This document shows, in pieces, positions 15,823 to 52,700 of a stretch of DNA of 64,000 bases. Source of the DNA: Felis catus. Taxonomy: Eukaryota. The stretch's first letter is position 1; each line of letters starts with the position of its first letter. The stretch is from contig NC_058383.1 in the NCBI RefSeq assembly GCF_018350175.1, positions 17,918,001 to 17,982,000 on the forward strand, read 5' to 3'. Below the pieces are notes generated by a model, which was given only the letters and a program-made list of their open reading frames with translations, was not told where the DNA came from and did no database searches. A program made the position numbers and the translations under genes.

Positions 15823-18800
15823 TCATTCCAGTCCTGTTGGCGGCTCCTCTTTGAGGGGCCTTGCCCGACCATCCCCTGTCCCAAAGGGCCTCAGGACCAA
15901 GTGCCCACGCTGGTGCTTGATTCGGGCAGAACTGTCACCAAAACCTTTGCCACACTCTGCACACTTATATGGCTTCTCCCCAGTGTGTGTTCGCCTATGT
16001 TTGACCAGATCTGAGCTCCGGGGAAACTCCTTCCCACAGAAGCCACACACATGGGGCTGGCTGGGTCCAGAGGGCTGGGCTCGGACTCGGGGTCGAGGGG
16101 CCATGGGTGCTGGGCCAGGGGGGTTATGTGGCCTCAGGAGAGTGGATGGTGGTGGTGGCCGNNNNNNNNNNNNNNNNNNNNNNNNNNNNNNNNNNNNNNN
16201 NNNNNNNNNNNNNNNNNNNNNNNNNNNNNNNNNNNNNNNNNNNNNNNNNNNNNNNNNNNNNNNNNNNNNNNNNNNNNNNNNNNNNNNNNNNNNNNNNNNN
16301 NNNNNNNNNNNNNNNNNNNNNNNNNNNNNNNNNNNNNNNNNNNNNNNNNNNNNNNNNNNNNNNNNNNNNNNNNNNNNNNNNNNNNNNNNNNNNNNNNNNN
16401 NNNNNNNNNNNNNNNNNNNNNCTGAGTGTGAAGGGCTTCGAGGTGTCAGTGGGGGGCTTGTGCCAAGAGGAGGTGGGGGTGGGCTTGAGCTGGGGGGTGG
16501 GCTGGGGATCAGGGGGGCCAAAGGGTAGCCTGGGAAGCTGAAGTCCTGGGGCTCCATGTGAGTGAGGCGGTGGCGGAGGAGGGTGGAGCTGAGGCTGAAG
16601 GTGCGGTCACATTCCGGACAGGCGTGAGGCCTCTCCCCACTGTGGGTGCGGAGGTGTTTGACCCGGGCAGAGCTGTCGGCAAAGCCCTTGCCACACTCAG
16701 GGCACAGGTAGGGCTTCTCTCCCGTGTGCACCCGCAGGTGCTTCACCAGGTCTGAGCCCCGGGCAAACTCCTTTCCACACACATCACAGCCAAAAGGTTT
16801 GGGCCCCAGGTGACTGCGCTGGTGGCTCAGAAGGCTGCAGCTGAGCACAAATCTTTTGCCACAATCGGTGCAGATATATGGCTTGTCCTGGGCCTTGGGT
16901 CCCTGTGGGGCTGCTGTGGCTGCTCGAGAAGGCTGCCGTCTGGGCACCACGGGCCGGGGTGGCTGCTCCCCCCGGTGTGTCCGCTGGTGCTTTATACGAG
17001 CAGAACTGTCACCAAAGCCCTTGCCGCAGATGCCACATTTGTAGGGCTTCTCACCCGTGTGTGTCCGCTGGTGTTTCACCAGGTCAGAACTCTGCCGGAA
17101 GCTCTTGCCACATTCACCGCAGATAGTGGGGCGCTCACCAGCCGGGATCCTGGACCGAGGAATCTTTGGGGGACCCTGGGCTGGTGGTCGGGCTCTGTAG
17201 GGCTTTTCACCACTATGAGTTCGCTGGTGTTTGATACGGGCAGAGCTATCCCCAAAGCCCTTGCCGCAGACCCCACACTTGTAGGGTTTCTCCCCTGTGT
17301 GGGTCCGCTGGTGTTTCACCAGATCTGACATCTGCCGAAAGCTCTTGCCACACTCACCACACACGGCAGCCCGATCGCTAGCCTGGCCCCAGCGTGGCTC
17401 TCCCAGGAGCCGGGGACCTCTGTCCCGAGCCTGAGGTTTTCCCGGTCCCTCTCTCTGGACCCACAAGTCATCCCAGGTCTGGATGCCTTCAGGTTTGAGA
17501 GAGGCATTTCCTACTTCATGACCTGGAGCCGGATCTTCCTCTTCCTTGAACCCCAAGTCATCCTCCTGGGGGGGATGTTCAAACTCATCCGGCTGAGCAA
17601 TCTCCACATTCTCACTCCCTAAACCTGGGGAGACAAAAGGGAGTAGTAGACCCTGCCCTTTGGCTCAGCTCCTATCTTTGATGGCACCTTCCCCAGGAAG
17701 GCTTCCTTGGCGATCTGTAGTCACAAGGATGTCTCTCCCTCTCTCCTCTGAACTTCTGAAATACTTAGTATTGCTGCCTCTCATCAACAATGGTAACTTC
17801 CTGTCAACGTGCCCTTAATACGTGCCGGTCACTGAACTACCCATCACTGAATCCTTGCAAACAATCCTATGATACAATGCTACTACTACTCCCATTTTAC
17901 AGACATGGAGATTCCAAGAACTTAAGCCACTTGCTTAAGGTTATAAAGCATCACGCTGGTAAGAACAGATACTACACTTGGCCAAAAGGCCAGGCAGCGA
18001 TGGGGTTAGGAAGTATTAAAGCCATGTTTCTCACTCGGGTCTGTCTGATTTCCAGGCCTGTGTTAACCACTACATTATACTGTCTCTATATAGAACACCT
18101 ACTATTTACTATTTCTATTATATCTTCTTATATTAGCCCATTGTGTAATGTATTACTTCAATTATCTTGCATATACCTGAGAGGACCCAGACCCACACCT
18201 GTCCCTCAAAATGCTTAGGAGAGGTAAGATCAAGCACAAATAATTATAATTGTGGGCTCAGAAAAACTGCGGTCACAAGAGAAAGAGGAAATAAGGAGAT
18301 AGGGCGAAGCTTTCACAGCACAGAAAAGAGTAAACCATGGAGAGGAATGGAAGATAAAGCTGGAAAGGGATGTTGGGACTAGATTAGGCATGTAAGGCCT
18401 AGATCGAACACTACATTAAGGCTTTTAATTAGCAGGCAGAAGGGAACTAGGGAAGGTTTTTGAGAAGGCAAACAGGATTACATCTGGACTTGGATCAATG
18501 TGGTTGCTGAGTGCATCACTGAAGAGAAAAGGGCTGTGGGGAGGTTTTTGCAATTGTCAAGACGAGACAGAACGAGGCCTGAAGTAGGGCAGAGGCTGTG
18601 AGGCTGCTGATGAGTCTCCAGGAGTGGGGAGAGTCCTTGCGATGATGCCCCTTCACGGCCTGACGCACAGTAGGTGCTCAGAAACGTTGGCTCCCTCCCT
18701 CGGTTTTTGCTCCCCTCCCCCTCCCCCTGGAAGCACGGTTCACGTCCGATTTTTCTGGGCTTCGGCCAGACACAGCCCGGCACCGGAGTCCCCACCCAGC

Positions 18801-27998: not shown

Positions 27999-30900
27999 AT
28001 GGTGAGTCCTTATGCCCAGGAATACAGGCATCTCTGCCTTCAGCCCCCAGCCCCCAGAGTAGCCAGATCCAGGCCAACCCACAGCAGGCTGACTTCTCGC
28101 TCCTGAGGTCAGGTTATACCGGAGGGCCCTTCCTGCTGCCCCCAGCAGCCTCATACTGTCTACCCCCCACCAACAGGACAAGGAGTATGTGGGTTTCGCT
28201 GCCCTCCCCAACCAGCTGCACCGCAAGTCCGTCAAGAAAGGCTTTGACTTCACACTCATGGTGGCAGGTCTGATGGGTTTTGTATAGGGGACCGGTGGGG
28301 GGAGGGGGTCCTCAAGCCACTCTGGCTGTCTCCTCACCTGACCAGGAGGACCTGTCCTGTCTACAGGGGAGTCAGGCCTGGGAAAATCCACCCTCATCAA
28401 CAGCCTGTTTCTCACCAATCTCTATGAGGACCGGCACCTGCCAGAGGCCAGTGGTAAGATCCTCCCGTCCTCTCCAGGTTCTCTGTCTCTCCCATCCCCA
28501 GGCTGCACTCTCTTTCTTTTCATCTGGGTCTCCCATGACTTTCTGGGGGACTCAGGCAGCTCGCTGCTTTCTTGAGAAACTGAAAGATGGCTGGGGGCAA
28601 CTGTGATTCTGAGAACGGAGATCAGTCCTGTCTCAGGCCCCTACCCAGCTCCCTGTCCTCCCTGTCCTCTCTCTGTCCTCACAGCTCGCTTGACACAAAC
28701 ACTGACCATTGAGCGCCGGGGTGTGGAGATCGAGGAGGGGGGTATAAAGGTGAAGCTGACCCTGGTGGACACACCTGGCTTTGGGGACTCAGTGGATTGC
28801 TCAGACTGGTGAGGAGCAGGGGAAGGAGCGGGGGCTAAGCTTCCTGGTATGGCTACTCTATGAAGACTAAGGGATCAGTTACAGGGCTGGTCTGCTCTGC
28901 CCCTGCTCTCCCCAAAAGGTGGGGTCTGTTTCTGGTGTCCATGCAGCCAAAGTGCCCAGTGTTTCCTGACACCCTGCCAGTCTCCTCTGATGTCTTTAGT
29001 TGGAGCCAAAGAAACAAGTCCCCCTGCCCCCCCCCAACTCCTGGCTAGCCTTGGCCCCTTCCCTATGCTGTGGCCCCTCATCTCTGACTGTACTCTCTCC
29101 TCCCATACCCTAGCTGGCTGCCTGTAGTGCGCTTTATTGAGGAGCAATTTGAGCAGTATCTTAGGGATGAGAGTGGCCTGAACCGGAAGAACATTCAGGA
29201 CTCCCGTGTCCACTGCTGCCTCTACTTCATCTCACCCTTTGGCCGAGGGTCTGGGGGGATACCCTGGGGGCTGGGGTGTTTGGGGAGGGGTGGGGGAGGG
29301 TCTCAGTGGCTTAAGACTGAACCCTGACCAAATCCCTCGGTGCAGGCTCCGTCCCCTAGATGTGGCCTTTCTCCGGGCAGTGCACGAAAAGGTCAACATC
29401 ATCCCAGTCATTGCCAAAGCAGATGCCCTGATGCCTAAGGAAACCCAGGCCCTCAAGCAGAGGGTAGGTCTGGTGACCTCTGACCTTTGGCCCTACATGA
29501 AACCAAAAGTCGCCATCAAACCTGAACTCAGCTTTGACTTCGTTGATCTTGGGCTAGCCTTTTGGAAGCATGATGTGTCAGGCTAGTCTGTGGGAGAAAA
29601 TTCCTGAGGAAGATGGGGAGTAAGCTGACTGAAGGAGCTGTGTCTCTGGAGGCTCAGAATGGAACCCCTGGGCTGGATGCTTTGCTAAGGCCTGAGAGTG
29701 GCAGCAAAGATATGATCACTCTTGATAGCCCTCCAGCCCCAGGATAATGACCCCCACTCCAATGACTTAAGTAATCTCTACACTCAACATGGGGCTGAAA
29801 CTCACAATCCCCGAGATCAAGAGTCACATGCTCCACGGACTGAGCCAGCCAGGCACCCCTTTGAGATTTTGGTTTGGGGTATCCTATATGTCCACCTCTC
29901 ACCATCTCTTTCATGTCTTTCTCTCTGTCTCTGACCACCTGGGACCTGTATCTCATTGTCTCCCACCAGGCAATGTCTGCTGCTCACAGCCTCTGTGTTT
30001 CTCTCTGTGTCTGTTCCCAGATCCGGGACCAGTTGAAGGAGGAGGAGATCAACATCTACCAGTTTCCCGATTGTGACTCTGATGAGGACGAAGACTTCAA
30101 GAGGCAGGATGCAGAGATGAAGGTGCAGAGGCAAAAGGAGGAAGGGGCAGAGAAGCAGGGGAGGAGGAGGTGTTGGTGGAAGCTGACAAGGAGGTTTCTG
30201 GCGAGGAGGGGCCAACGGTGATTCCCTGACTTCTGCCCTCCAGGAAAGCATCCCTTTCGCAGTTGTCGGTTCCTGCGAGGTAGTGAGGGACGGTGGGACC
30301 CGTCCAGTGAGGGGACGCCGCTACTCCTGGGGTACTGTGGAGGGTGAGTAAGGTGGGGCACGCGTTCTGAGGCCAACAGGGAGCCCAGAACGCCGCTGAG
30401 TTAACAGCACCCAACATATGAAGTTGGGACGATCTCCGGTCCCGGGGGTCTTAAGAATCAAGAGGGGTCCTTGGACTGCAGACCCTCACCTAGAGTGGGG
30501 GCAGGACTCCGGGCAGACTTGACCCGGCCAAGAAGCTCCCTGACGCTCGCCGGTCCGCCCCTCAGTGGAGAACCCACATCACTGCGATTTCCTGAACCTG
30601 CGACGGATGCTGGTGCAGACACACCTACAGGACCTGAAGGAGGTGACCCACGATATTCTCTATGAGGGCTACCGGGCCAGCTGCCTACAAAGCCTGGCCC
30701 GGCCTGGGGCGCGTGATCGAGCCAGCCGCAGGTGAGAGCTCGAGCTCAGTCCTAGATGCTCCCAAGGCCCGGCCCTCACTACCCCGGACCCCGCCTTCAC
30801 CATCCAGACCGATCCCCCAGAATCTTTCCCCACCCACTTTGCTGACGGCATTGGAAGGACAAGGCCCCGCCTCCTAGACCCCAACCTCGCCCCACGCCCT

Positions 30901-31824: not shown

Positions 31825-33894
31825 CTACTCCTGGTCCTTGGCGTCGCCATGCGTGATGACGTAGCAGATGTTCTTGTAGTCTACATTGCCTCCCACGTCG
31901 GGGGGGAACGCTGCCCACATGTTCCTGATCTGGGGAAAGATTCAGGGGCGTCTTCTACCGGTTGCGTACGCTCCCCTCACCCCTCCCTCTGCGTCTCCCG
32001 GGCCCCTCCCCAACTCACCTCTTCCGGGGAGAAGCGGTCGCACTGCGTGGTAAGCAGCTCCTCCAGGCTGGAGAGAGGTGACATATGGGGAGTTGAGACT
32101 GGGCTTCGTGGTTCCTTTCCACTCCCTCCCACCTCATCCTTTGTTGTCATTCCTGGTATCATCTTCAAAACCGAAGTCACTGTAGATCCCTCACTGGTCT
32201 CCCAGTCTGGCCTCCCTGCTTTTGCTCTTCCCCTCCCGAATGTGCTATCAAAATGTACTCCTATTGCCCATTTCCACAGTTCTAATTTTTCCCTTATTCC
32301 CTCCCTTATACCTAACCCTTGGTAAGAATTTAAGGAGGCTTTCTGTGTGTGAGCAGCTGGAGAGGGTCACTTACAACTGCTTCTTGATGGTGCCCTTCCC
32401 CTCATGATCCAGGACCTTGAAGGCTCCAGTGATCACGTCCTCAGGATCAGCACCTGCAGGGTCAGAGGGCATGTGAAGCGGAAGGGTCCCTGAACGGTCT
32501 GTCCTTGAAAGGTCTGGGGAGGAGTGGTTGGGGGCTTAGATCCAAGACACTTCATTCACCTTTAAGCTTCTCTCCAAACATGGTCAGGAAGACGGTGAAG
32601 TTGATGGGACCACTGGCTTCCTTCATCATGGCATCTAGCTCCTCATTCTTCACATTGAGGCGCCCTGGAGCAGGGTGGGGGGAGCTGGAGTGGGGTCCTG
32701 GGGCCAAGGGTTGATCCTTCCCATAATTTCAGATCATCCCACCCACTTTTTGCCTGGGCAGGCTGAGGCCCAAGGTGGGGCTAGCAGGGCTGAAACCCAA
32801 GGCTTCCATATTCCCAGTACTTCCTCAGTCTTGAGTCTTTATGGGTGGGATAAGGGGCTCACCCATGGCTGCGAAGGTGTCCCGCAGATCTTCCTTGTCG
32901 ATAATGCCATCACGGTTCTGGTCGATTACCGTGAAGGCCTGCGCAAGGTAGGGGCAGGGAGGGGTTAGGTCCCTTATGGCCGGGCTTCAGCATCCCTATC
33001 CCAGGCAGATCAGATTCTGGCCCCCAGCCAGCTGTCTTCTTACATGCCAAGCAGGGAGGGGAGCAAGGAATTCTAAACCCTTCCCCTCCCCCCCCCAAAC
33101 AGGTGCACATTCCAGGGAGGGGTATGAGGGGGGAGGAACAGCAGGGGGTGCCTTTGGTCAGCCTTCAGTCTCCCTTCTCCTCTCACCTCCTTGAACTCTT
33201 GGATCTGAGTCTGGTCGAACATGGAGAAGACATTGGAGCTTCCGCCCTCTGCTGCCGCCCTTCTCCTGGCCTTCTTGGGTGCCTGCGGGGTGAGGGATGG
33301 GCAAAGGGGTCTATGGGCCAATCCCTACTCCTCTCTGGAGGCAGTGGATTAGATTCAGGGTTCTTTGGGTCATTTTTCTAAAGCAACTGTTCTGGCTCTA
33401 GGCTTCCCCTCCCTTATGACCTCTGCTGAGGGGACTTGCTTAAATCTGTATCCCTAAATTCCTGTCCTTCATCCTACCCAACAAGTGGGACTTCTCAACA
33501 AGTCCCCTTCTCTGTGCCCTGAGCCTGTCTCCTCTGAGTCCCAGACTTGTTGTGTGACCTAATCTACTCATTCACCCTGTCTGAACCTCTACTTCCTCAT
33601 TTATAAAATGGGAGTTGGACTTCTTGCCTGGCTGGTCCCAGAGGGTTTGGGGAAGAGGGAGTGCAGAAAGGTGCAGAGGATGCTTTGAGAGGGACAGGTC
33701 TGTGAGTGGAGAGTCTGGGCAGATTATCCTTGGTTGGGTCCTTTAAGCCGTCATTCTGTACGATCCCCATTAGTAATGCCAAGAAAGGGAGGATTCATCT
33801 TTTTTTCTCTTACTGGACTGGGAATCGGCTATGTTCTTTTCAAAAGTGAAGCTGCCCTGAGGTCTGAGGGGTCTGGGGGATTCTCACTCACCAT
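31825..33894 (-). CDS. MYL11: Myosin regulatory light chain, fast skeletal (MYLPF), 170 aa, 7 coding exons
   Basis: Exons 33894-33892, 33282-33187, 32938-32863, 32664-32560, 32453-32375, 32067-32019, 31929-31825 (513 nt). [51 protein letters not shown]... (EF-hand), ending [10 protein letters not shown]. Confidence 0.97.
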
Positions 33895-43751: not shown

Positions 43752-46700
43752 GAATTAAGGCCGACTCTGAAGGTTTTGGGCCTGAGAAACTAGACAAATG
43801 GAGTTGTTCATATATTGGTGTGGATGAGAAAAGGAGGTTAGAGGGGTATGTTAAGAGCTCAGTTTAGGAATGTGAAGTTTGAAATGCTAATTGGACATCC
43901 ATCTGGAGATGTCAAGAAAGTTGGATGTATGACCTGTATAAGTCTGGAATTTGGGGAGAAGTTTAAACTGGAGGTAAGCTGGAGATTGAGAGTTATTGGC
44001 CTCTAGATGGGACTAAATTTCACCTGTGGGATTGGACGAGCTCATCAAGGCAGCAAGTGTAGATACAAAAGGAAACTCAGAGATTGAGCCCTGCAGCTCT
44101 AACATTTCAAGAATGGGAAGATAAGAACGAACCAGCACAGGAAGGAGAAACTAGAGAGGTAGAAGGAGAACCAGGGCAGTGTGATCTCTGGAAGCAAATC
44201 GAAGAGGGGTTTTGGGACCAGTTGTATGGAATGCTGCTGATGGGTCAAGTAAAGTCAAGTCTGCAAATTGACCTCTGGATTCAGCACAGTAGAGGTCATT
44301 AGTGACCTTGATAAAGGCAGTTTGCACAGGGCAGTAGTGTAGAGCCTGACTGGAGAATGGGAGGAAAGAGATTAAAGACAGCAAGTCTGTATTCTGAAGT
44401 TTTGCTGACTAGGTAGAGAGAGAAATGATGTAATGTTTGGAGGGGAAGGGGGGTAGTCAAGAGACTTTTTTTGTAACATAGAGGAAATAACAGATACTGG
44501 TATGCCACTGGGAATGATCTAGTAGGGAGAGAAAAACTGATGATGCAGGAGAGGTGGGAGGCTTGCTGGAGTGATGGACTGTGTAGGTGAGAGGGGATGG
44601 GACGCAGTACCCAAGTGGAAAAGCTGTGTTTGGCCAGGACCACAGACAGTTCACCCACAGCAACAGGGAGAAAGCAGGGACACAGATGCAGGTAGGTGGG
44701 TAAAAATAGCATGGGAGCTTGTGGGAGTTACATGTTTAATAGGTATTAGGTAAAATAACTAGTACATCAAACCTGTCATTTCATGGATGCTATTGCTAAG
44801 TGGAGAAAAAATATTAAGTAAATAGTACTGGGGAGGTATGCAGGTAAAACACAAGATCACACTTCAATGACTGAATTTGGGGATGTAAGAGGTTATTACT
44901 TTTTACTTTTTTCTGGGTAAGAAATGAAAGTCTGAGCTACGGAATGGCTGTGGAGGTAGAGAGAAGGAACAGGCATGAATGAAACTCAACATGTAGTGTT
45001 AAGACTTGATTAGCCACGGGGAGTGATGTAGGGCTCTCTTTTCCAACGTGAGGCTAAGTGAATGGAATTCTCAGACACAACGATGGGCACCCTCAAGAGG
45101 ACAGGTCTAGAGCAGAGATTTTATTCTTTGGGATACAGAGACACGAGAAAGGTCTGAGGCACAGCTGGCTTCTCAAGCCTTCACCAAGAACCAGGTCCCA
45201 ATGGACATGCTGGCAGAGAACTGATGAAATCCACTGAGGCAGTTAGGGCAGGCCCTGCTCTGGGGTGATCAAAGAATTCAGACAGTGCTACGGGAGATCT
45301 GATGCTGTGGACAGTGGAAGCTTTCTGAAGAAGGTGACCTTGAAGGTCTATGGGGTGGTGGCAGATGAAGGATGGAGAGAGAGCACATCCTGTGCTGGGG
45401 AACGGGTAGGGAGCACATAGGATGTGGAGGCAAGGGTGGGAAGCTGGAGCCTGGAATGCTTTGATGATGGTCTCGGTCATTGGCTTAACCTTGATAGCAG
45501 TGCTAGGAAGGTCGGTGGAGGTGCGTGGTGGTGAACCTCTGAGGTTAATCTGGAACTGGATCTAGGAGGGGTCTGGGCTGGGGCTGGTTGTGGGGGGCAG
45601 GCTTAGTTTGGGGCAGAGAGCCCCCAACTCCTGTGATTGCCCTCATGGTCTTTCCCAATACCCACAGGCAACAGGACCTGTATCGAATCCTGAAGGCTTA
45701 CACTATCTACCGGCCCGATGAGGGCTACTGCCAGGCCCAGGCCCCAGTGGCCGCCGTGCTGCTCATGCACATGCCTGCTGAGGTCAGCATACGCTGGTCC
45801 TGGTTGGGGAGGGACTGGGAGGACCTTGGCCTACAGTGGTGATGGGGGAGCTCTCTGCTCCCTGTTTCTCAGGCCCCTCCCTCCTTCCTTGTTCTCGCTC
45901 TTCTCAGCAAGCTTTTTGGTGCCTGGTGCAGATCTGTGACAAGTACCTCCCCGGTTACTACAGTGCAGGGCTGGTGAGTGTCTGGGGGCTGGGTGCACCC
46001 AAGGTTGTGACTTTCTCCTGAGGCTGCAGGGAGGTCCTTGTCCTGCCTCCTCCCTCTCCCCCCCCCCCCCCCTTGGTCCTTTTGTCCCTCTGCTCTGGGC
46101 CTCTCCCACTGAGGTGAGGATCCCCCACTAGGGACAGTCCTACCCCACGGGAGCCACAGTAGGCCTCTTCTCATGGTTCATCCCACTTCCAGGAGGCCAT
46201 TCAGCTGGACGGAGAAATCTTTTTTGCGCTGTTGCGCCGGGCCTCCCCGCTGGCACACCGACACCTGCGGCGGCAACGCATTGACCCCGTGCTCTACATG
46301 ACAGAATGGTTCATGTGCATCTTTGCCCGCACCCTGCCCTGGGCTTCAGTGCTGCGTGTCTGGGATATGTTCTTCTGTGAAGGTACTTCTGTAGCCGTTC
46401 AGGCCATGAGGGGGCCGGGGTTTCCATGGTGGCTGCCAGAGAGTGGCCTGCTGCCCGAAGTTGCCTCTGGGACCTAGGCTTCCCTGTAAGCAGTCTGGGG
46501 GCTGGAGAAACTGGGGCCTAGTCTTGGCTCTGCTATCAGTCCAGAACCTACTGTTCCTCTCAGGAACTCGAAACCCATGGCAGCTCATTTCCCTTCGTGG
46601 GACCTCAGTTTCCTCATCTGTACGGTTGGCACTAGACAGGGATGGGGCCTGTTGAGTCTCTTCTGACTGGGACACACTGAGGTCCCAGCCCTGATCACCC

Positions 46701-47613
46701 GCGCTCTCTTCTTTCTGACCTTGCAGGCGTCAAGATCATCTTCCGCGTGGCCCTGGTGCTGCTGCGTCACACGTTGGGCTCAGTGGAGAAGCTGCGCTCC
46801 TGCCAAGGCATGTATGAGACCATGGAGCAGCTGCGCAACCTGCCCCAGCAGTGCATGCAGGAGGACTTCCTGGTGCACGAGGTAGGCCGTGGCCTTAGCA
46901 CACCCACACCTGCTTCAGCCCATCCCCATCCTCACCTTCACTCCGGTACCCGTTTCTTCTCCGTCTAGGTGACCAACCTCCCAGTGACAGAAGCACTGAT
47001 TGAGCGAGAGAACACAGCCCAGCTCAAGAAGTGGCGAGAAACCCGGGGGGAGCTGCAGTATCGGCCCTCTCGGCGACTACATGGCTCCCGGGCCATCCAT
47101 GAGGAGCGTCGGCGGCAGCAGCCACCCCTGGGCCCCTCCTCCAGCCTTCTTAGCCTCCCTGGCCTCAAGAGCCGAGGCTCCCGGGCAGCTGGAGGGGCCC
47201 CCTCCCCACCCCCTCCTGTCCGCAGGGCCAGTGCTGGGCCTGCCCCAGGACCTGTGGTCACCGCTGAGGGACTGCATCCATCCCTTCCTTCGCCTACCGG
47301 CAACAGCACCCCACTGGGTCCCACCAAGGAGACTCGGAGGCAGGAGAAGGAGCGGCAGAAACAGGAAAAGGAACGTGAGAAGGAGCGGCAGAAACAGGAG
47401 AAAGAACGGGAGAAGCAGGAGAAGGAGCGGCAGAAATGGGAAAAAGAGCAGGAGAAGGAGCAACAGAAGCAGGAGAAGGAACGGCAGAAGCAGGAAAAGA
47501 AGGCCCAAGGCAGGAAGCTCTCACTGCGTCGAAAGGCAGATGGACCCCCAGGCCCCCAGGATGGTGGGGACAGGTCCTCCGCATCTGAGGCCCGGCAGGA
47601 TGCTTACTTCTGA
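37895..47613 (+). CDS. TBC1D10B: TBC1 domain family member 10B (Rab-GAP, EPI64B), 804 aa, 9 coding exons
   Basis: Exons 37895-38823, 42027-42126, 42422-42529, 42621-42727, 45668-45782, 45908-45973, 46193-46382, 46727-46881, 46969-47613 (2415 nt). Pro/Thr-rich N-terminus [15 protein letters not shown] Arg finger IEKDLHR, Gln finger YCQ, charged C-terminal repeat, C-terminal DAYF. Confidence 0.97.
43225..44710 (-). mobile_element. Long L2 fragment in TBC1D10B intron 4, containing (GA)n at 43721-43748
   Basis: cagcaaatatttaactgaacacctgctatctgccagg..., aggatcattctggctgctgtg..., ggtcattagtgaccttgata. Confidence 0.7.
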
Positions 47614-48660
47614 CCTCTGTCCCCGGGGCTGGACTGCATGGCCTCCCTTGTTTTCCCCTCAGTCAGGAGCAGGCCTGGCCTGGGGTGCTGCCCCGAGCTT
47701 CCTGGGCAGACTGTCCTTCTGGGGAAAGTGGTTTGATTTCCCATCTCCTTGCCAGCTGCTGATCCCTACACAGCTGGGACAGTGACAGTGCATGGGGCAG
47801 CTGCCTTTCCTCGGGGCAGGTGTGAACAAGTCTGGAGCCCCTTCACCTCCAGTTAGGTCCTGCTGGGGTCTCTGGCACTCCTGCCCCGATTTCCTTTGGG
47901 GTTCTTTCCCAGGTGCAGTCCTGATTGGCCTTTTGTCACCTCAGGGGTGACTTGGCAATGGGAATCAGCAGTTTTCAGATTCTTACACTCCAGTTGCTCC
48001 CCTTATCCATGAGTGGAGCTGGGTTCCTCTTTCCCTTCTTCAGCCCTGCTGGTCTCCCCCACTTCCTGGCTGGGGGCCACGGCTCTCCTTGCTCTACTTC
48101 TGGACATCTCTGTTGTAATTATGTACAGAGCAGCTGGTCGGCCCAGGGTGGGGGTGCTTGCTCTGTCTTCTATCCTTTGGTTCTCCTTCCATAATGTTCT
48201 TGCACTCGTTTATTTAAGGGGACATGCACTGGCACAGGAAATGTCCCCCCTTTCCCCACCTACCATTCTCCTTGTTCTCTTTCACCCACCCTCCTCTGTG
48301 TTCTCAGGCCTCTCCTGCTTTGTCTTACCAGGGCCCCCGCCTTCCACCTTGTTTCCCCTCCAGCCCCTATCTGGGTAAGGGGTCTTCCCCTGAGCTCCAG
48401 GGGGTGGAACCCAATGTTTACATTCTCTTGTCTGCTCCCACCCTGTGCGGCGCTTCGAGGAATCAGAAAAGAACCTGCTGTTGTACCTGGGCCTGTCTCC
48501 TGCCTTGTTATTTGATAAAGGGAGTTAGAATAAGAACTAGGTGGGGTGGGGGTGGGGAGGAAACAATGGAGCAGGCCAGGATCTGGGTGTCTGCTGAAGC
48601 ACTCAGCTGGTCTTGGCAGGGAGGGACCTTTTGGCCTTTGGTCCATCTTTCAGTCACTCA

Positions 48661-49281
48661 TCAACAACTGTTGAGCTCCTGCTCCCCCTTTGCCTGGGAT
48701 CTGCTGCCTCTGTTGTCACTGGACTGGAGTCCTCTACGCACCACCTGCAGCACCCGGATCTCTTTCCCAAAGTGCTCGTGCAACTCCTGGAAGCTGGAGG
48801 GGGGACTGAGGGTGGCTAGGAAGCCACAGTCCTCTGGGGGTGAGCTGGGTTGTTGGCCAGCTGCCTGGCACAGCTCCCGGTACTGGGCCTCCAGTGGGGG
48901 TAGTAGCGCCACCAGCCGCCTCCAGCTCACCCCAGCCAGTGCCCACAGCCACGCTGCCAGCTCTCCCTGGTTTTCTGCTGCCAGCTTGTAGGTCCGCCCA
49001 CCTTCTGTGCCCTCAACCCCGGGGGTCAAGATGGTAAAGGCATAGGGTTCTGTGGCCCCGAGGCGTGGCTCCACCTGGCAGTTTTCTAAGAGGATGAGGC
49101 CCAGGGGTGTGCGGTCTGCCTGGTGCTCCAGGTAGAAGAGGAGGTTTCCCCGGAGGACAAACCAGCGGCGTTGATAGCTGATATTTCGGGCTCCCTTCTT
49201 TAGCAAGATGCCCTCCCGGTCTGGAGCCTGTGTTCTGTATCCGTGGAAGAAACTGAGCACGGACTTTCGGTGCAGTTTCAT
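48661..49281 (-). CDS. Sesquipedalian/PHETA (IPIP27/FAM109)-like PH-domain endocytic adaptor, 206 aa, single coding exon
   Basis: Family-type start MKLHRKSV; PH domain GILLKKG...YQRRWFVLRGNLLFY...PLGLILLENCQVE...YAF...RTYKLAAENQGELAAWLWAL; C-terminal F&H motif SFQELHEHFGKEIRVL. Kozak context accATG. Polypyrimidine/AG acceptor at 49307-49306, 24 nt upstream of the ATG. Confidence 0.88.
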   Translation of the reverse strand: MKLHRKSVLSFFHGYRTQAPDREGILLKKGARNISYQRRWFVLRGNLLFYLEHQADRTPLGLILLENCQVEPRLGATEPYAFTILTPGVEGTEGGRTYKLAAENQGELAAWLWALAGVSWRRLVALLPPLEAQYRELCQAAGQQPSSPPEDCGFLATLSPPSSFQELHEHFGKEIRVLQVVRRGLQSSDNRGSRSQAKGEQELNSC

Positions 49282-50199
49282 GGTAGTTCAATCTGGGAGT
49301 TAACCCTGGGGGCAGGAGAGAGGAGGGGTGGTCTCCTTATTATCATGGGTACCCCATGCTGCCCTCCTGGGGCTCCAGTAGGTTCTTCCTGGGCATAGCC
49401 TTAGTCTAGTGGGATTCAGGACTGTCCTAAAGACCTAGAGGTCTTGTCCCCACAGCACAGGGACCCATACCCACCCCCCCCATCCCCCCCCCCCCCCCCC
49501 CCTTTAGCTCTCCCCCTTGGGCCAGCTTACAGATTCTGGGCTGGGGCCGCTGGGGCCCTACTTGCCAGCAGTGGGGCTTTATCCTGAGGCTGTGGTCTGA
49601 GAGAGAGGCATTGTTGCCTCTTTCCAGGCCTACCTGAGATCGGGGCACAAGAGGCTTCTAGCCTGGATTCTGGACACAGGAACCACTGTCACCTGTACGG
49701 TGATGGCTCTTCCCACCTCTGAAACCAGGAACTCGACCAGGGGACAGGCGTGGGGTAAATGACTTCCCCTGGGTCCTAAAGAGAGCTGGGTTCGGAAAGT
49801 GCCCCCAAAGCCAGCTGGGGGCTCCAGGCGGGCCATCGTGGGAACTCGGTCTCTCCTCAGGGAGAAGAGCAAGGCCGCACCTCGGACTAGGAGAGGACAG
49901 AACTGGACACTGACTGGGAAAGCAGGATTCCTATGGAGACGGTGAGGGGCACAAAGCCCTTGGCCAACCCTGGGGAAAGGTGACTCAACTCTGTAAAGGG
50001 AACCGGGCCGAAACCCACTGTCCCACTTCGCCCCTCCCTGATGCTGGGCGCCCCTTTAAGTAGTGTGCTTCACTTTCTCCTCAGAGTCTCCAACTGCTGT
50101 AGGAGGGAATCTAAACCGCATCCGGCCATCCCTATCGTCTGATCAGGGTCTAGGCGTTCATTTGTGGCCTGTTCTCGCTGTTGTCGCCCCCAAACTGCT

Positions 50200-50950
50200 C
50201 ACGTCACCCTGGGGAGGGCGGGGTTGTCTTCTCCGCTCTCGGCGTACTTCCGCCCGCTTTTCCAGCTAGTCATCTAATCGGAGTGAAGCCACTTCCGGCC
50301 TTCTCTGGAGCCTTCCGCAGTTCTCTTCCGGGTGATGGCGCCCGGCGCCCCGGATGTAGCCCTGGTGAAAGTCTCTCTTTTTCTTCCCCCACGGCCTCCC
50401 GTGGATCCTGAGGTGAGCGCGAGCCGGTGGGGCTGCTCGAATCCCCGCGGCTCTGCCGCCTCTCTTTGTACACTTAGGCTTGTACACTTAGCCCAGGACA
50501 GTTGGGGGTCACCCCGCGGAGCTGGGAGTTCAGCGCGGGGCGGAGGGGGTGGCCAGGACGCCAGGTCCTGGGTCCGTCCAGGCCCCGCGGGCTCTGAGGG
50601 AGCTGGGGGTGGAGGAGAGGGTGTCAGCCCGCGGATCCCCGTCGCACCCAGGACTGCGGGGGCTAGGGATGGGGGGGGGGGTACGTGGGGGAGCCTGCCT
50701 TTTTTCGTCAAGGGTGGGGGTTGCCCGTGGGGAGCCCCTCTGCGCCACCGCCCCTCCGCCCCCGCTCCAGCAACTCTTTTGGATGCCGAACCAAGTCCGG
50801 GGGGCCTCCTGGCGGCCAGCTTCCCTTTCGGCCCCTCATTCTGTGCTCCCTCTCCTCCCGAGCTGGATCTAGTGCGTACCGGGTGATTATTTGTTGTGCT
50901 GGGGCTCTTCCGCGGTGAGTAGCCTCGCCCACTTCCCTTAATCTGCATCC
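50200..50950. promoter_or_regulatory. CpG-island promoter of CD2BP2, probably bidirectional
   Basis: Tandem ETS cores cttccg at ~50247, 50292, 50312 and 50325; YY1-like gatggcg 50334; CD2BP2 exon-1 donor GAG|GTGAG at 50412/50413; PHETA-like gene lies divergently. Confidence 0.75.
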
Positions 50951-50991
50951 TTTCTCTCGGCTCAGCCCAGGGAAGGCTCCTCAGTCCAGTC

Positions 50992-52700
50992 ATGCCAAAG
51001 AGGAAAGTGACCTTCCAAGGTGTGGGAGAGGAGGATGATGAGGATGAAATCAGTGTTCCCAAGAAGAAGGTGAGGGGGCCAGACTCCTGCATTCTTAGGA
51101 GGAGTGAGGGGAGAGAAAGAACTAGAAGCCAGAAGAGAAAGAAGGGGGCAGGGGGCAAAGAAAGCAGAGAGGGGGCTAGCTTTTCCATGTTCTCTGGGAA
51201 GTGGGTTTGGAGAATTTCCAGTTGGGGAAGGTTTTGAAGAAAACTCTACCTGGAGTATTTTGAGGAATAGCCAGTAACCTGCGTCTCTCAACTTGCTGGC
51301 CCTTCCTCACAGCCAGTGGATCCTGTGGCTGGGGCAGGGGGTCCTGGGAGCCGCTTCAAAGGCAAACACTCTTTAGACAGTGATGAGGAGGATGATGATG
51401 AAGAGGAGGGGTCCAGCAAATATGATATCTTGGCTTCGGAGGATGTGGAAGGTGAGCTAAACCCAAGAATTGGTTCTGCTGGAGGAACAGATAGAGCTTT
51501 TGGGGATGGGGGGGTGGCAAGGGCGCGCACGTGCGTGTGTGTGGGTGTGTGTGCGCACGCGCGCGTGCACCCAGCACGGGATGCCTGTGTCTTTCATGCA
51601 GGTCAGGAAGCAGCCACGCTCCCCAGTGAGGGAGGTGTGCGGATCACACCCTTCAACCTGCAGGAGGAGATGGAGGAAGGCCACTTTGATGCTGATGGCA
51701 ACTACTTCCTGAACCGGGATGCTCAGATCCGAGACAGCTGGCTAGACAACATTGACTGGGTGTGGCCCAGGGGCTGACGTGGTGGGGGCCTGGAGGCAGC
51801 CAGTGCTGGGCTTGGGCCCTGCTCACGGTTTGTAGGAGATAACCACCCCCACCCCTGTTTTCACATCACAGGTGAAAATCAGGGAGCGGCCACCTGATCA
51901 GCGCCCACCGTCCGACTCAGAGGAAGAGGACAGCCTGGGCCAGACACCAATGAGTGCCCAAGCCCTTCTGGAGGGCCTTCTGGAGCTGCTGTTGCCAAGA
52001 GAGACCGTAGCTGGCGCACTGAGGCGTCTGGGGGCCAGAGGAGGAGGCAAAGGGGGCAGCAAAGGGGGTGGGCGGCCCAGTTCCCCCCAGCGCTTGGATC
52101 GGCTCTCTGGGTTGGCCGACCAGATGGTGGCCCGGGGCAACCTTGGCGTGTATCAGGAGACAAGGGAACGATTAGCCATGCGGCTGAAGGGGTTGGGGTC
52201 CCGGACCCAGGGACCCCCTGAGACCACACCCCCTCCCTCTCTGGACATGTTTGCTGAAGAAGTGGCAGAGGGGGAGCTGGAGACCCCAACTCCTACGCAG
52301 AAGGGAGGTAAGACTGGAGGGCAGAGGAGTGCTGGGGGCAGGGGCAGGGGCCAGGGAACTTGAGGCCCAGATGGCCTTGTCTGTTGTTTTAGAAGCAGAG
52401 TTGCCAGGAGATGGTCTGGTGGACGTGATGTGGGAATATAAGTGGGAGAACACAGGGGATGCTGAGCTGTATGGGCCCTTCACCAGCACCCAGATGCAGG
52501 TAAGCCCCTTTCTACTTCTTTCTGCCACTTCTCTCCTCCCCCACCGCCCATACCAGTCCTTTCCCAGCTCTTGCTCTCTTTTCCTGCAGACCTGGGTGAA
52601 CGAAGGCTACTTCGCAGATGGTGTTTATTGCCGGAAGCTGGACCCTCCTGGTGGACAGTTCTACAACTCCAAACGCATTGACTTTGACCTCTATACCTGA
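50992..52700 (+). CDS. CD2BP2: CD2 cytoplasmic tail-binding protein 2 (U5-52K, GYF domain), 342 aa, 6 coding exons
   Basis: Exons 50992-51069, 51313-51451, 51602-51759, 51872-52307, 52393-52499, 52590-52700 (1029 nt). [12 protein letters not shown]..., GYF domain WEYKW...GPF...WVNEGYF..., ending IDFDLYT*. Confidence 0.97.

Follow-up and report, generated by a model that had tools for sequence, protein, structure and literature searches.

A window of 64,000 nucleotides of the cat genome (Felis catus, NC_058383.1, positions 17,918,001 to 17,982,000) contains an intact gene for a third member of the PHETA family, also known as Ses or IPIP27. The complete coding sequence lies at 48661-49281 on the minus strand of the window, whose coordinates are used throughout. 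We put the probability at about 0.75 that the gene is functional and protein-coding and is the cat's representative of an ancient third PHETA/Ses/IPIP27 lineage that extends across the jawed vertebrates and is sister to PHETA1 and PHETA2 together. The gene had been noticed earlier by a model that was given only the letters of the DNA (the sequence-only reading). Its observation is confirmed, and its interpretation found partial support, being right in kind and too narrow in scope.

A PH domain protein with a C-terminal F&H motif

The coding sequence consists of 206 codons followed by TGA (48661-48663) in a single coding exon. It had been described as an uninterrupted frame for 206 residues starting MKLHRKSV, and the list of open reading frames (ORFs) and the translation both bear this out. 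Several longer ORFs are present elsewhere in the GC-rich window, so ORF length by itself says little; the weight is carried by a Pfam match and by the 96 homologues found in a protein search.

The Pfam match is to a PH domain (PF00169, E = 3.5e-15) at residues 22-115, encoded by 48937-49218 on the minus strand. The nearest sequences of solved structures in the PDB were the GRP1/cytohesin PH domains (E = 1e-13). An AlphaFold2 model built from a 71-sequence alignment had a mean predicted local distance difference test score (pLDDT) of 81, and was laid out as a helix at residues 5-14, seven strands, a long helix at 105-140, a disordered linker and a C-terminal helix at 164-192. When this model was used as a Foldseek query it retrieved PH domains, the best being 1fgy (GRP1, E = 6.7e-9), with PEPP1 and DAPP1 also among the matches. 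The full PH domain claimed from the letters is thus confirmed by profile, predicted fold and structural search. The long helix (48862-48969, minus strand; pLDDT 83-97) is the C-terminal helix of the PH domain running onward, and reaches the region that matches the segment with a coiled-coil/dimerisation role in IPIP27A/B (PMC3046058). A complex prediction for two copies of the protein gave a score of 0.01, which has no bearing on dimerisation either way.

The F&H motif is a 13-residue helix with obligatory phenylalanine at position 2 and histidine at position 6 and, at position 9, a residue that is bulky and hydrophobic (PMC6743453), and mutation of its conserved E-I pair strongly reduces binding to OCRL1 (PMC3046058). 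All four of these published rules hold for residues 163-175 of the cat protein, SFQELHEHFGKEI (48757-48795, minus strand), in which phenylalanine is at position 2, histidine at 6, phenylalanine at 9 and the E-I pair at 12-13. F164 and H168 are invariant across 71 family members, and F164-E169 and G172-I175 are invariant across 20 eutherians. The motif opens the predicted C-terminal helix, consistent with the helical state of the Ses1 F&H peptide (PMC6743453). The sequence-only reading had the protein end with SFQELHEHFGKEIRVL; the motif is indeed present, and 28 residues follow the quoted segment. Between the long helix and the motif there is a linker of only 22 residues (141-162), which has neither a proline-rich stretch nor PPPxPPRR, the pacsin-2 binding motif of PHETA1 (PMC7272357).

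The protein would therefore be built from four parts, an N-terminal helix starting MKL, the PH domain, the long helix, and a short linker leading into the C-terminal helix that opens with the F&H motif. Judged from its sequence, the F&H helix would bind the ASH-RhoGAP-like region of OCRL and INPP5B, while the PH domain and the helix after it would supply contacts with membrane or partners on endosomal or trans-Golgi membranes. As both the proline-rich linker and PPPxPPRR are missing, the product would be a minimal PH-plus-F&H adaptor.

The gene is open in most jawed-vertebrate lineages

The homologue search proposed in the sequence-only reading returned near-full-length, intact proteins in a wide range of species. 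Orthologues were found in other carnivores (hyaena, with 92% identity, lion, jackal, sea lions, dogs and seals) and in other eutherians (moles, shrew, beaver, kangaroo rat, marmot, squirrel, hippo, musk deer, tree shrew and armadillo). They were also found in marsupials (approximately 60% identity), monotremes (approximately 56%), turtles (approximately 46%), frogs and sharks. Cluster look-ups added eleven other felids (nine with exactly 206 residues), spotted hyaena and meerkat; cattle, sheep, goat, deer, pika, rabbit and hare; and Anolis, a caecilian, a salamander, lungfish, coelacanth, bichirs and several teleosts. In total the intact ORF encodes 206 residues in 10 further felid species, one hyaena and the meerkat, while two more felid models are of other lengths, and about 40 further named mammals have an intact protein of similar length. 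The ORF is thus open in more than 50 named mammalian species, including lineages that diverged more than 150 million years ago, and no feliform, caniform or pinniped model is interrupted. Retention in carnivores, as had been proposed, is therefore an understatement, since the gene is generally present in mammals and in most jawed vertebrates. The intact orthologues carry the automatic name "sesquipedalian-1-like", and the exact cat protein is already held in the NCBI and UniProt collections (P0362), so that the gene, taken before as uncharacterised, does exist as automatic models.

Conservation was expressed for each segment as the mean pairwise identity among 20 eutherians. The F&H 13-mer (163-175) had the highest value of all segments (0.91), followed by the PH core (22-104, 0.86), the long helix (105-140, 0.81), the N-terminal part (1-21, 0.79) and the linker (141-162, 0.68). 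The lowest values were those of the post-motif helix (176-192, 0.55) and the tail (193-206, 0.48). The cat protein differs from those of nine other felids at 2-5 residues, none of them in the F&H 13-mer. When the cat ORF was evolved in a neutral simulation with substitutions only, the share of simulated ORFs still open fell from 26% at d = 0.05 to 1.1% at d = 0.2, and to 0% at d = 0.5. Together with the uneven conservation and the decayed copies described below, this makes strong, though indirect, evidence of constraint.

The searches also yielded some minor observations. Non-eutherian members of the third group and fish PHETA1 end in a conserved, clathrin-box-like L-[IL]-D-[FL]-[GSE]. Two "sesquipedalian-1-like" models from the catshark Scyliorhinus torazame (P0072 and P0074) belong to the third clade; each is on a contig of 147,401,461 bases, and the pair could reflect a tandem duplication or a single gene split between models. 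A scan of metagenome contigs with the eutherian alignment gave a single locus, on a JGI contig of 6.1 kb (Ga0065711_1064497) that encodes at 1263-1688 a PH protein 39% identical to residues 1-140, and is presumably eukaryotic DNA within the metagenome.

The third gene belongs to a separate, old clade

Full-length profile matches placed the cat protein among the PHETA family members, and its position was resolved by maximum likelihood in IQ-TREE (76 rows and 237 columns, LG+C20+F+G4 with posterior mean site frequencies). Support is given as ultrafast bootstrap / Shimodaira-Hasegawa-like approximate likelihood ratio test (SH-aLRT). The third PHETA sequences formed one clade (99/95) that is sister to PHETA1+PHETA2 (100/100) and contains shark, fish, amphibian and reptile members. 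The cat protein lies outside the PHETA2 clade (100/99), which sits inside tetrapod PHETA1 (93/99; 94 in a quick tree). A quick tree of 100 rows agreed, with an SH-aLRT of 96 for the third clade, and in both trees PHETA2 was represented by amniotes only (P0259, P0376, P0383 and others). Echidna and the turtle Carettochelys each carry all three genes, and Tupaia carries the third gene together with PHETA2. The proposal of a third PHETA/Ses paralogue is borne out by the separate clade and by the species that hold all three genes. On the topology of these trees the third gene is the older lineage among the three and not a late addition, and PHETA2 is suggested to be a copy of PHETA1 made on the amniote stem and not an old vertebrate paralogue.

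Human 16p11.2 and 12q24 hold a series of paralogue pairs, namely SH2B1/SH2B3, ATXN2L/ATXN2, ATP2A1/ATP2A2, MYLPF/MYL2, CORO1A/CORO1C and KCTD13/KCTD10. These pairs fit an origin of both clades in the early vertebrate genome duplications.

Two further observations concern individual proteins in the trees. The echidna third paralogue (P0036) and echidna PHETA1 (P0143) are both reported from a contig of 84,223,737 bases, and may share a chromosome-scale scaffold. Amphibian proteins named 'sesquipedalian-2' by NCBI (Xenopus laevis P0131 and the caecilian P0163 and P0166) group with PHETA1.

Comparison with known F&H proteins

In PHETA1 (Ses1/IPIP27A/FAM109A), as in the third protein, an MKL helix, a PH domain and a further helix precede an F&H motif that includes the E-I pair, and the gene has one coding exon; identity to non-eutherian PHETA1 is approximately 34-37%. 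The third protein differs in belonging to the separate ancient clade, in being approximately 45 residues shorter and in lacking the proline-rich linker with its pacsin-2 site. The loci are also different, the third gene adjoining CD2BP2 and TBC1D10B whereas PHETA1 adjoins SH2B3 and ATXN2 (PMC7272357). PHETA2 (Ses2/IPIP27B/FAM109B) is likewise a PH plus F&H adaptor without PPPxPPRR (PMC7272357). Its distribution sets it apart, since in our trees it is confined to amniotes within tetrapod PHETA1 while the third clade reaches sharks, and both genes occur together in echidna, Carettochelys and Tupaia. APPL1 and Frabin/FGD4 use an F&H helix on the same surface of OCRL/INPP5B (PMC6743453); their architectures (BAR-PH-PTB and DH-PH-FYVE, respectively) are unrelated to that of the third protein, and the motif is all that they have in common with it.

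Zebrafish Pheta2 (zgc:153733, chr3:32.82 Mb) has been described as the more divergent copy, lacking PPPxPPRR and showing no synteny with human PHETA1 or PHETA2 (PMC7272357). In our trees the second teleost paralogue, represented by Esox, Conger, Paramormyrops, Anguilla and Morone, falls in the third clade; these fish members keep a long linker (approximately 270 residues in all), unlike the cat protein. No third-clade member from ostariophysans, the group that includes zebrafish, was among the retrieved proteins; all twelve ostariophysan proteins in that set were of PHETA1 type. As the second teleost paralogue lies in the third clade and PHETA2 is limited to amniotes, zebrafish pheta2 is probably an orthologue of the third gene, a fish form of which has then probably been the subject of earlier work.

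Start site and upstream exon

The main ATG (49279-49281) stands in the context ACC ATG A. The good Kozak context that had been claimed for it holds for the purine at -3 and not for +4, where there is A rather than G. An in-frame TGA lies 9 nucleotides 5′ of this ATG, which is therefore the earliest start possible in the exon. A candidate 3′ splice site (49306-49330, minus strand) consists of a pyrimidine-rich tract of 23 nucleotides (49308-49330) followed by AG at 49306-49307. The AG is exactly 24 nucleotides 5′ of the ATG, as the sequence-only reading had it, and remains a candidate site; a further AG, 11 nucleotides 5′ of the ATG, is a second candidate acceptor.

Some gene models from other species have N-terminal extensions, and these were compared with the cat DNA by tblastn against a target limited to 48601-52000. 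The extensions of two hyaena models (P0371 and P0374) and a marmot model (P0016) mapped to 49634-49836 on the minus strand, with the aligned upstream portions of the hyaena models stopping at 49634-49636. A good donor, CAG/GTAGGC, has its GT at 49632-49633. Together the mapped extensions and the donor point to an intron of 328 nucleotides in the 5′ untranslated region (UTR), at 49306-49633 on the minus strand, and to at least one upstream exon. The extensions are in-frame fusions whose sequences are unrelated between species, so that the upstream exon (49634-49836) is not conserved as protein and is probably non-coding. Within the putative intron, at 49470-49510, there is a run of approximately 25 C on the plus strand with C-rich flanks.

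The gene would thus have at least one non-coding exon 5′ of its only coding exon, with a CpG-rich bidirectional promoter region apparently shared with CD2BP2. The stretch between the two genes (50200-50800) has a GC content of 0.63-0.71 and a CpG observed/expected ratio of 0.57-0.84, compared with 0.05-0.46 across the third gene (48600-49999), and its position and composition make it likely to be the shared promoter.

Decayed copies and the human locus

Models from several lineages are damaged, as is expected where constraint has lapsed. The colobine monkey models are frameshifted within the PH domain, and several lesions mark the lemur model. The bonobo model (P0033) is 77% identical over 71% of the query, but residues 1-60 are missing and the first 21 or so residues of the model are unmatched. 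Baleen-whale and Pipistrellus (bat) models are also degraded, truncated or frameshifted. Muroid rodents contributed no protein to the 96 homologues, which is absence from a search and not proof of loss.

For humans the state of the gene is taken from the literature and from the protein models of non-human primates. We take CD2BP2-DT to lie on the TBC1D10B side of CD2BP2 in the human gene order. This gene was described, in a study of breast cancer that does not mention PHETA, as a long non-coding RNA (lncRNA) of 1215 nucleotides with "weak protein-coding potential" (PMC12005790). The non-coding transcript divergent from CD2BP2 that had been mentioned in the sequence-only reading is accordingly in the literature. 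The published coordinates (PMC12005790), the gene name and the human gene order put CD2BP2-DT in the same relative position and orientation as the cat gene, divergent from CD2BP2 and on the TBC1D10B side; the two differ in that the human gene is reported as an RNA of weak coding potential while the cat ORF is intact. Its position and the bonobo model lead us to infer that CD2BP2-DT is a decayed orthologue of the third PHETA gene.

Alternative explanations

A number of observations weigh against a functional gene of an ancient lineage. When mammalian third genes were grouped with the whole PHETA1/2 clade in an approximately unbiased (AU) test, the tree was 25 log-likelihood units worse and was not rejected (p-AU = 0.087). 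The outgroup rows of the main tree are unnamed cluster representatives, of which the one checked was nearest to an arthropod cluster; the split between the two vertebrate clades is independent of the root. Cat and dog proteins are 88% identical, which indicates fairly fast evolution. The last six ancestral residues have been lost by frameshift in carnivores: the C-terminus is C-L-L-(M/T/I)-S-D in other eutherians, but NSC or SS in cat, hyaena, dog and sea lions. A relic of the ancestral eutherian C-terminus is still legible in the cat at 48650-48664 (minus strand), where the +1 frame over the stop reads L-M-S-D-stop, so a small frameshifting deletion probably took these residues in the carnivore ancestor. 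The upstream exon of the cat contains an ATG (49834-49836) that opens a frame of approximately 70 codons, which after splicing would close just 5′ of the main ATG. Finally, one gut metatranscriptome and fourteen runs guessed to be RNA (at least 11 studies) contained 74-85% of the sampled words of 48400-50300. They are weak evidence for expression of the third gene, since this interval includes the intron and may overlap the 3′ UTR of the neighbouring gene.

A lineage-specific retrocopy, or a recent duplicate of PHETA1 or PHETA2 inserted between TBC1D10B and CD2BP2, is superficially plausible, as there is only one coding exon and the protein starts with MKL like PHETA1. PHETA1 and PHETA2 also have one coding exon, however, so that exon structure is uninformative, and an intron is inferred in the 5′ UTR. 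The separate clade with its shark, fish, amphibian and reptile members speaks against such an origin, and forcing the mammalian third genes with amniote PHETA1/2 cost 54 log-likelihood units and was rejected (p-AU = 0.0004). The recent retrocopy inside PHETA1 that the sequence-only reading had named as fatal to its proposal was thus not found; we consider this origin extremely improbable, and the tree and the AU test rule it out on present data. A transcribed relic in the cat resembling human CD2BP2-DT, with an ORF open by recent history and a protein that is unmade or unneeded, would agree with the degraded primate, baleen-whale and bat copies, with a human locus described solely as a lncRNA, and with the C-terminal frameshift and upstream ATG described above. 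It would also agree with a private change in the cat protein, E144Q, where at least 90% of eutherians have E. Against it, every feliform, caniform and pinniped model is open, the felid proteins are only a few residues apart with an unchanged F&H 13-mer, neutral evolution would keep approximately 1% of ORFs open at d = 0.2, and conservation is concentrated in the PH domain and the F&H motif. We therefore regard a relic as quite improbable. A frame disrupted as in a unitary pseudogene or lncRNA gene was found neither in the cat nor in other feliforms, whose ORFs are intact.

It is also conceivable, though unlikely, that the protein is made and acts mainly as a competitor or regulator, occupying the single F&H site of OCRL/INPP5B without recruiting pacsin-type partners. 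Tetrapod members have approximately 165-225 residues compared with approximately 240-300 for PHETA1/2, and the long linker is absent. The cat protein has no PPPxPPRR, the motif with a role in pacsin-2 binding (PMC7272357), and binding at the F&H site, which is used by APPL1 and Ses1/2, is mutually exclusive (PMC6743453). On the other hand, PPPxPPRR is also missing from PHETA2 and zebrafish Pheta2, which are nonetheless regarded as adaptors (PMC7272357), the conservation of the PH domain (0.86) and of the helix (0.81) suggests more than a decoy peptide, and the fish and shark members of the clade retain a long linker. The reading as a functional adaptor gene of the ancient third lineage is thus preferred over all three alternatives.

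Implications for the PHETA family

Noakes et al. (2011) wrote that "vertebrates have two versions" of the family (PMC3046058), and Ates et al. (2020) sought further zebrafish paralogues and reported none (PMC7272357). Within the literature searched we found no paper on the third gene under its possible names, and 'Ses3' had only unrelated uses among the matches listed. The third gene is a so far unstudied member of the family that is already present as automatic gene models. A conserved third adaptor changes the history of the family, PHETA2 becoming a late copy and the third gene an old paralogue. A fuller history can be proposed, although we see it as evenly balanced between right and wrong. 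In it vertebrates have three PHETA genes, the oldest split separates the CD2BP2-linked gene from PHETA1, and PHETA2 is an amniote copy. The third gene persists in most mammals, was disabled independently in primates (leaving CD2BP2-DT), baleen whales and some bats, is unseen in muroids, and has zebrafish pheta2 as an orthologue. If this is true, the zebrafish double knockout models a gene set that is absent from humans and mice, and cats, dogs, cattle and rabbits have an extra OCRL/INPP5B adaptor.

OCRL is the enzyme mutated in Lowe syndrome. The probable re-assignment of the orthology of zebrafish pheta2 would affect the interpretation of the pheta1/2 double knockout in relation to human disease. 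It is further predicted that carnivore, ruminant and lagomorph models of Lowe syndrome and of Dent-2 disease hold an additional competitor for the one F&H site of OCRL/INPP5B. A link to species differences in Lowe/Dent-2 biology, as put forward in the sequence-only reading, is speculation. CD2BP2-DT, for its part, would acquire a possible origin as the transcript of a dead PH-domain gene.

Neighbouring genes

The third PHETA gene had been placed between TBC1D10B and CD2BP2, and Pfam matches to RabGAP-TBC and GYF do flank the ORF. The last exons of the TBC1D10B-like gene lie at 45549-47610 on the plus strand (RabGAP-TBC, E = 5.5e-10 and 1.3e-17); the ORF at 46969-47610 ends the protein, and a matching N-terminus, METGPAPLV, is found at approximately 37.9 kb. 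The 5′ part of the CD2BP2-like gene occupies 50992-52697, also on the plus strand, with the N-terminus in the ORF at 50923-51234 and the GYF match (E = 4.1e-9) in 52188-52697. The third PHETA gene is therefore convergent (tail-to-tail) with the TBC1D10B-like gene and divergent (head-to-head) from the CD2BP2-like gene.

Further along the window are septin exons on the plus strand (28342-30735, with an exon at 28.3 kb; Pfam Septin), exons of a gene resembling MYLPF, the fast skeletal myosin regulatory light chain (32552-33321, minus strand), and a C2H2 zinc-finger ORF (15826-17664, minus strand). The order ZNF, septin, MYLPF, TBC1D10B, third PHETA gene, CD2BP2 agrees with the block syntenic to 16p11.2 that had been proposed. 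Runs of N are present at 2294-2602 and at 16162-16421, the latter breaking the zinc-finger ORF.

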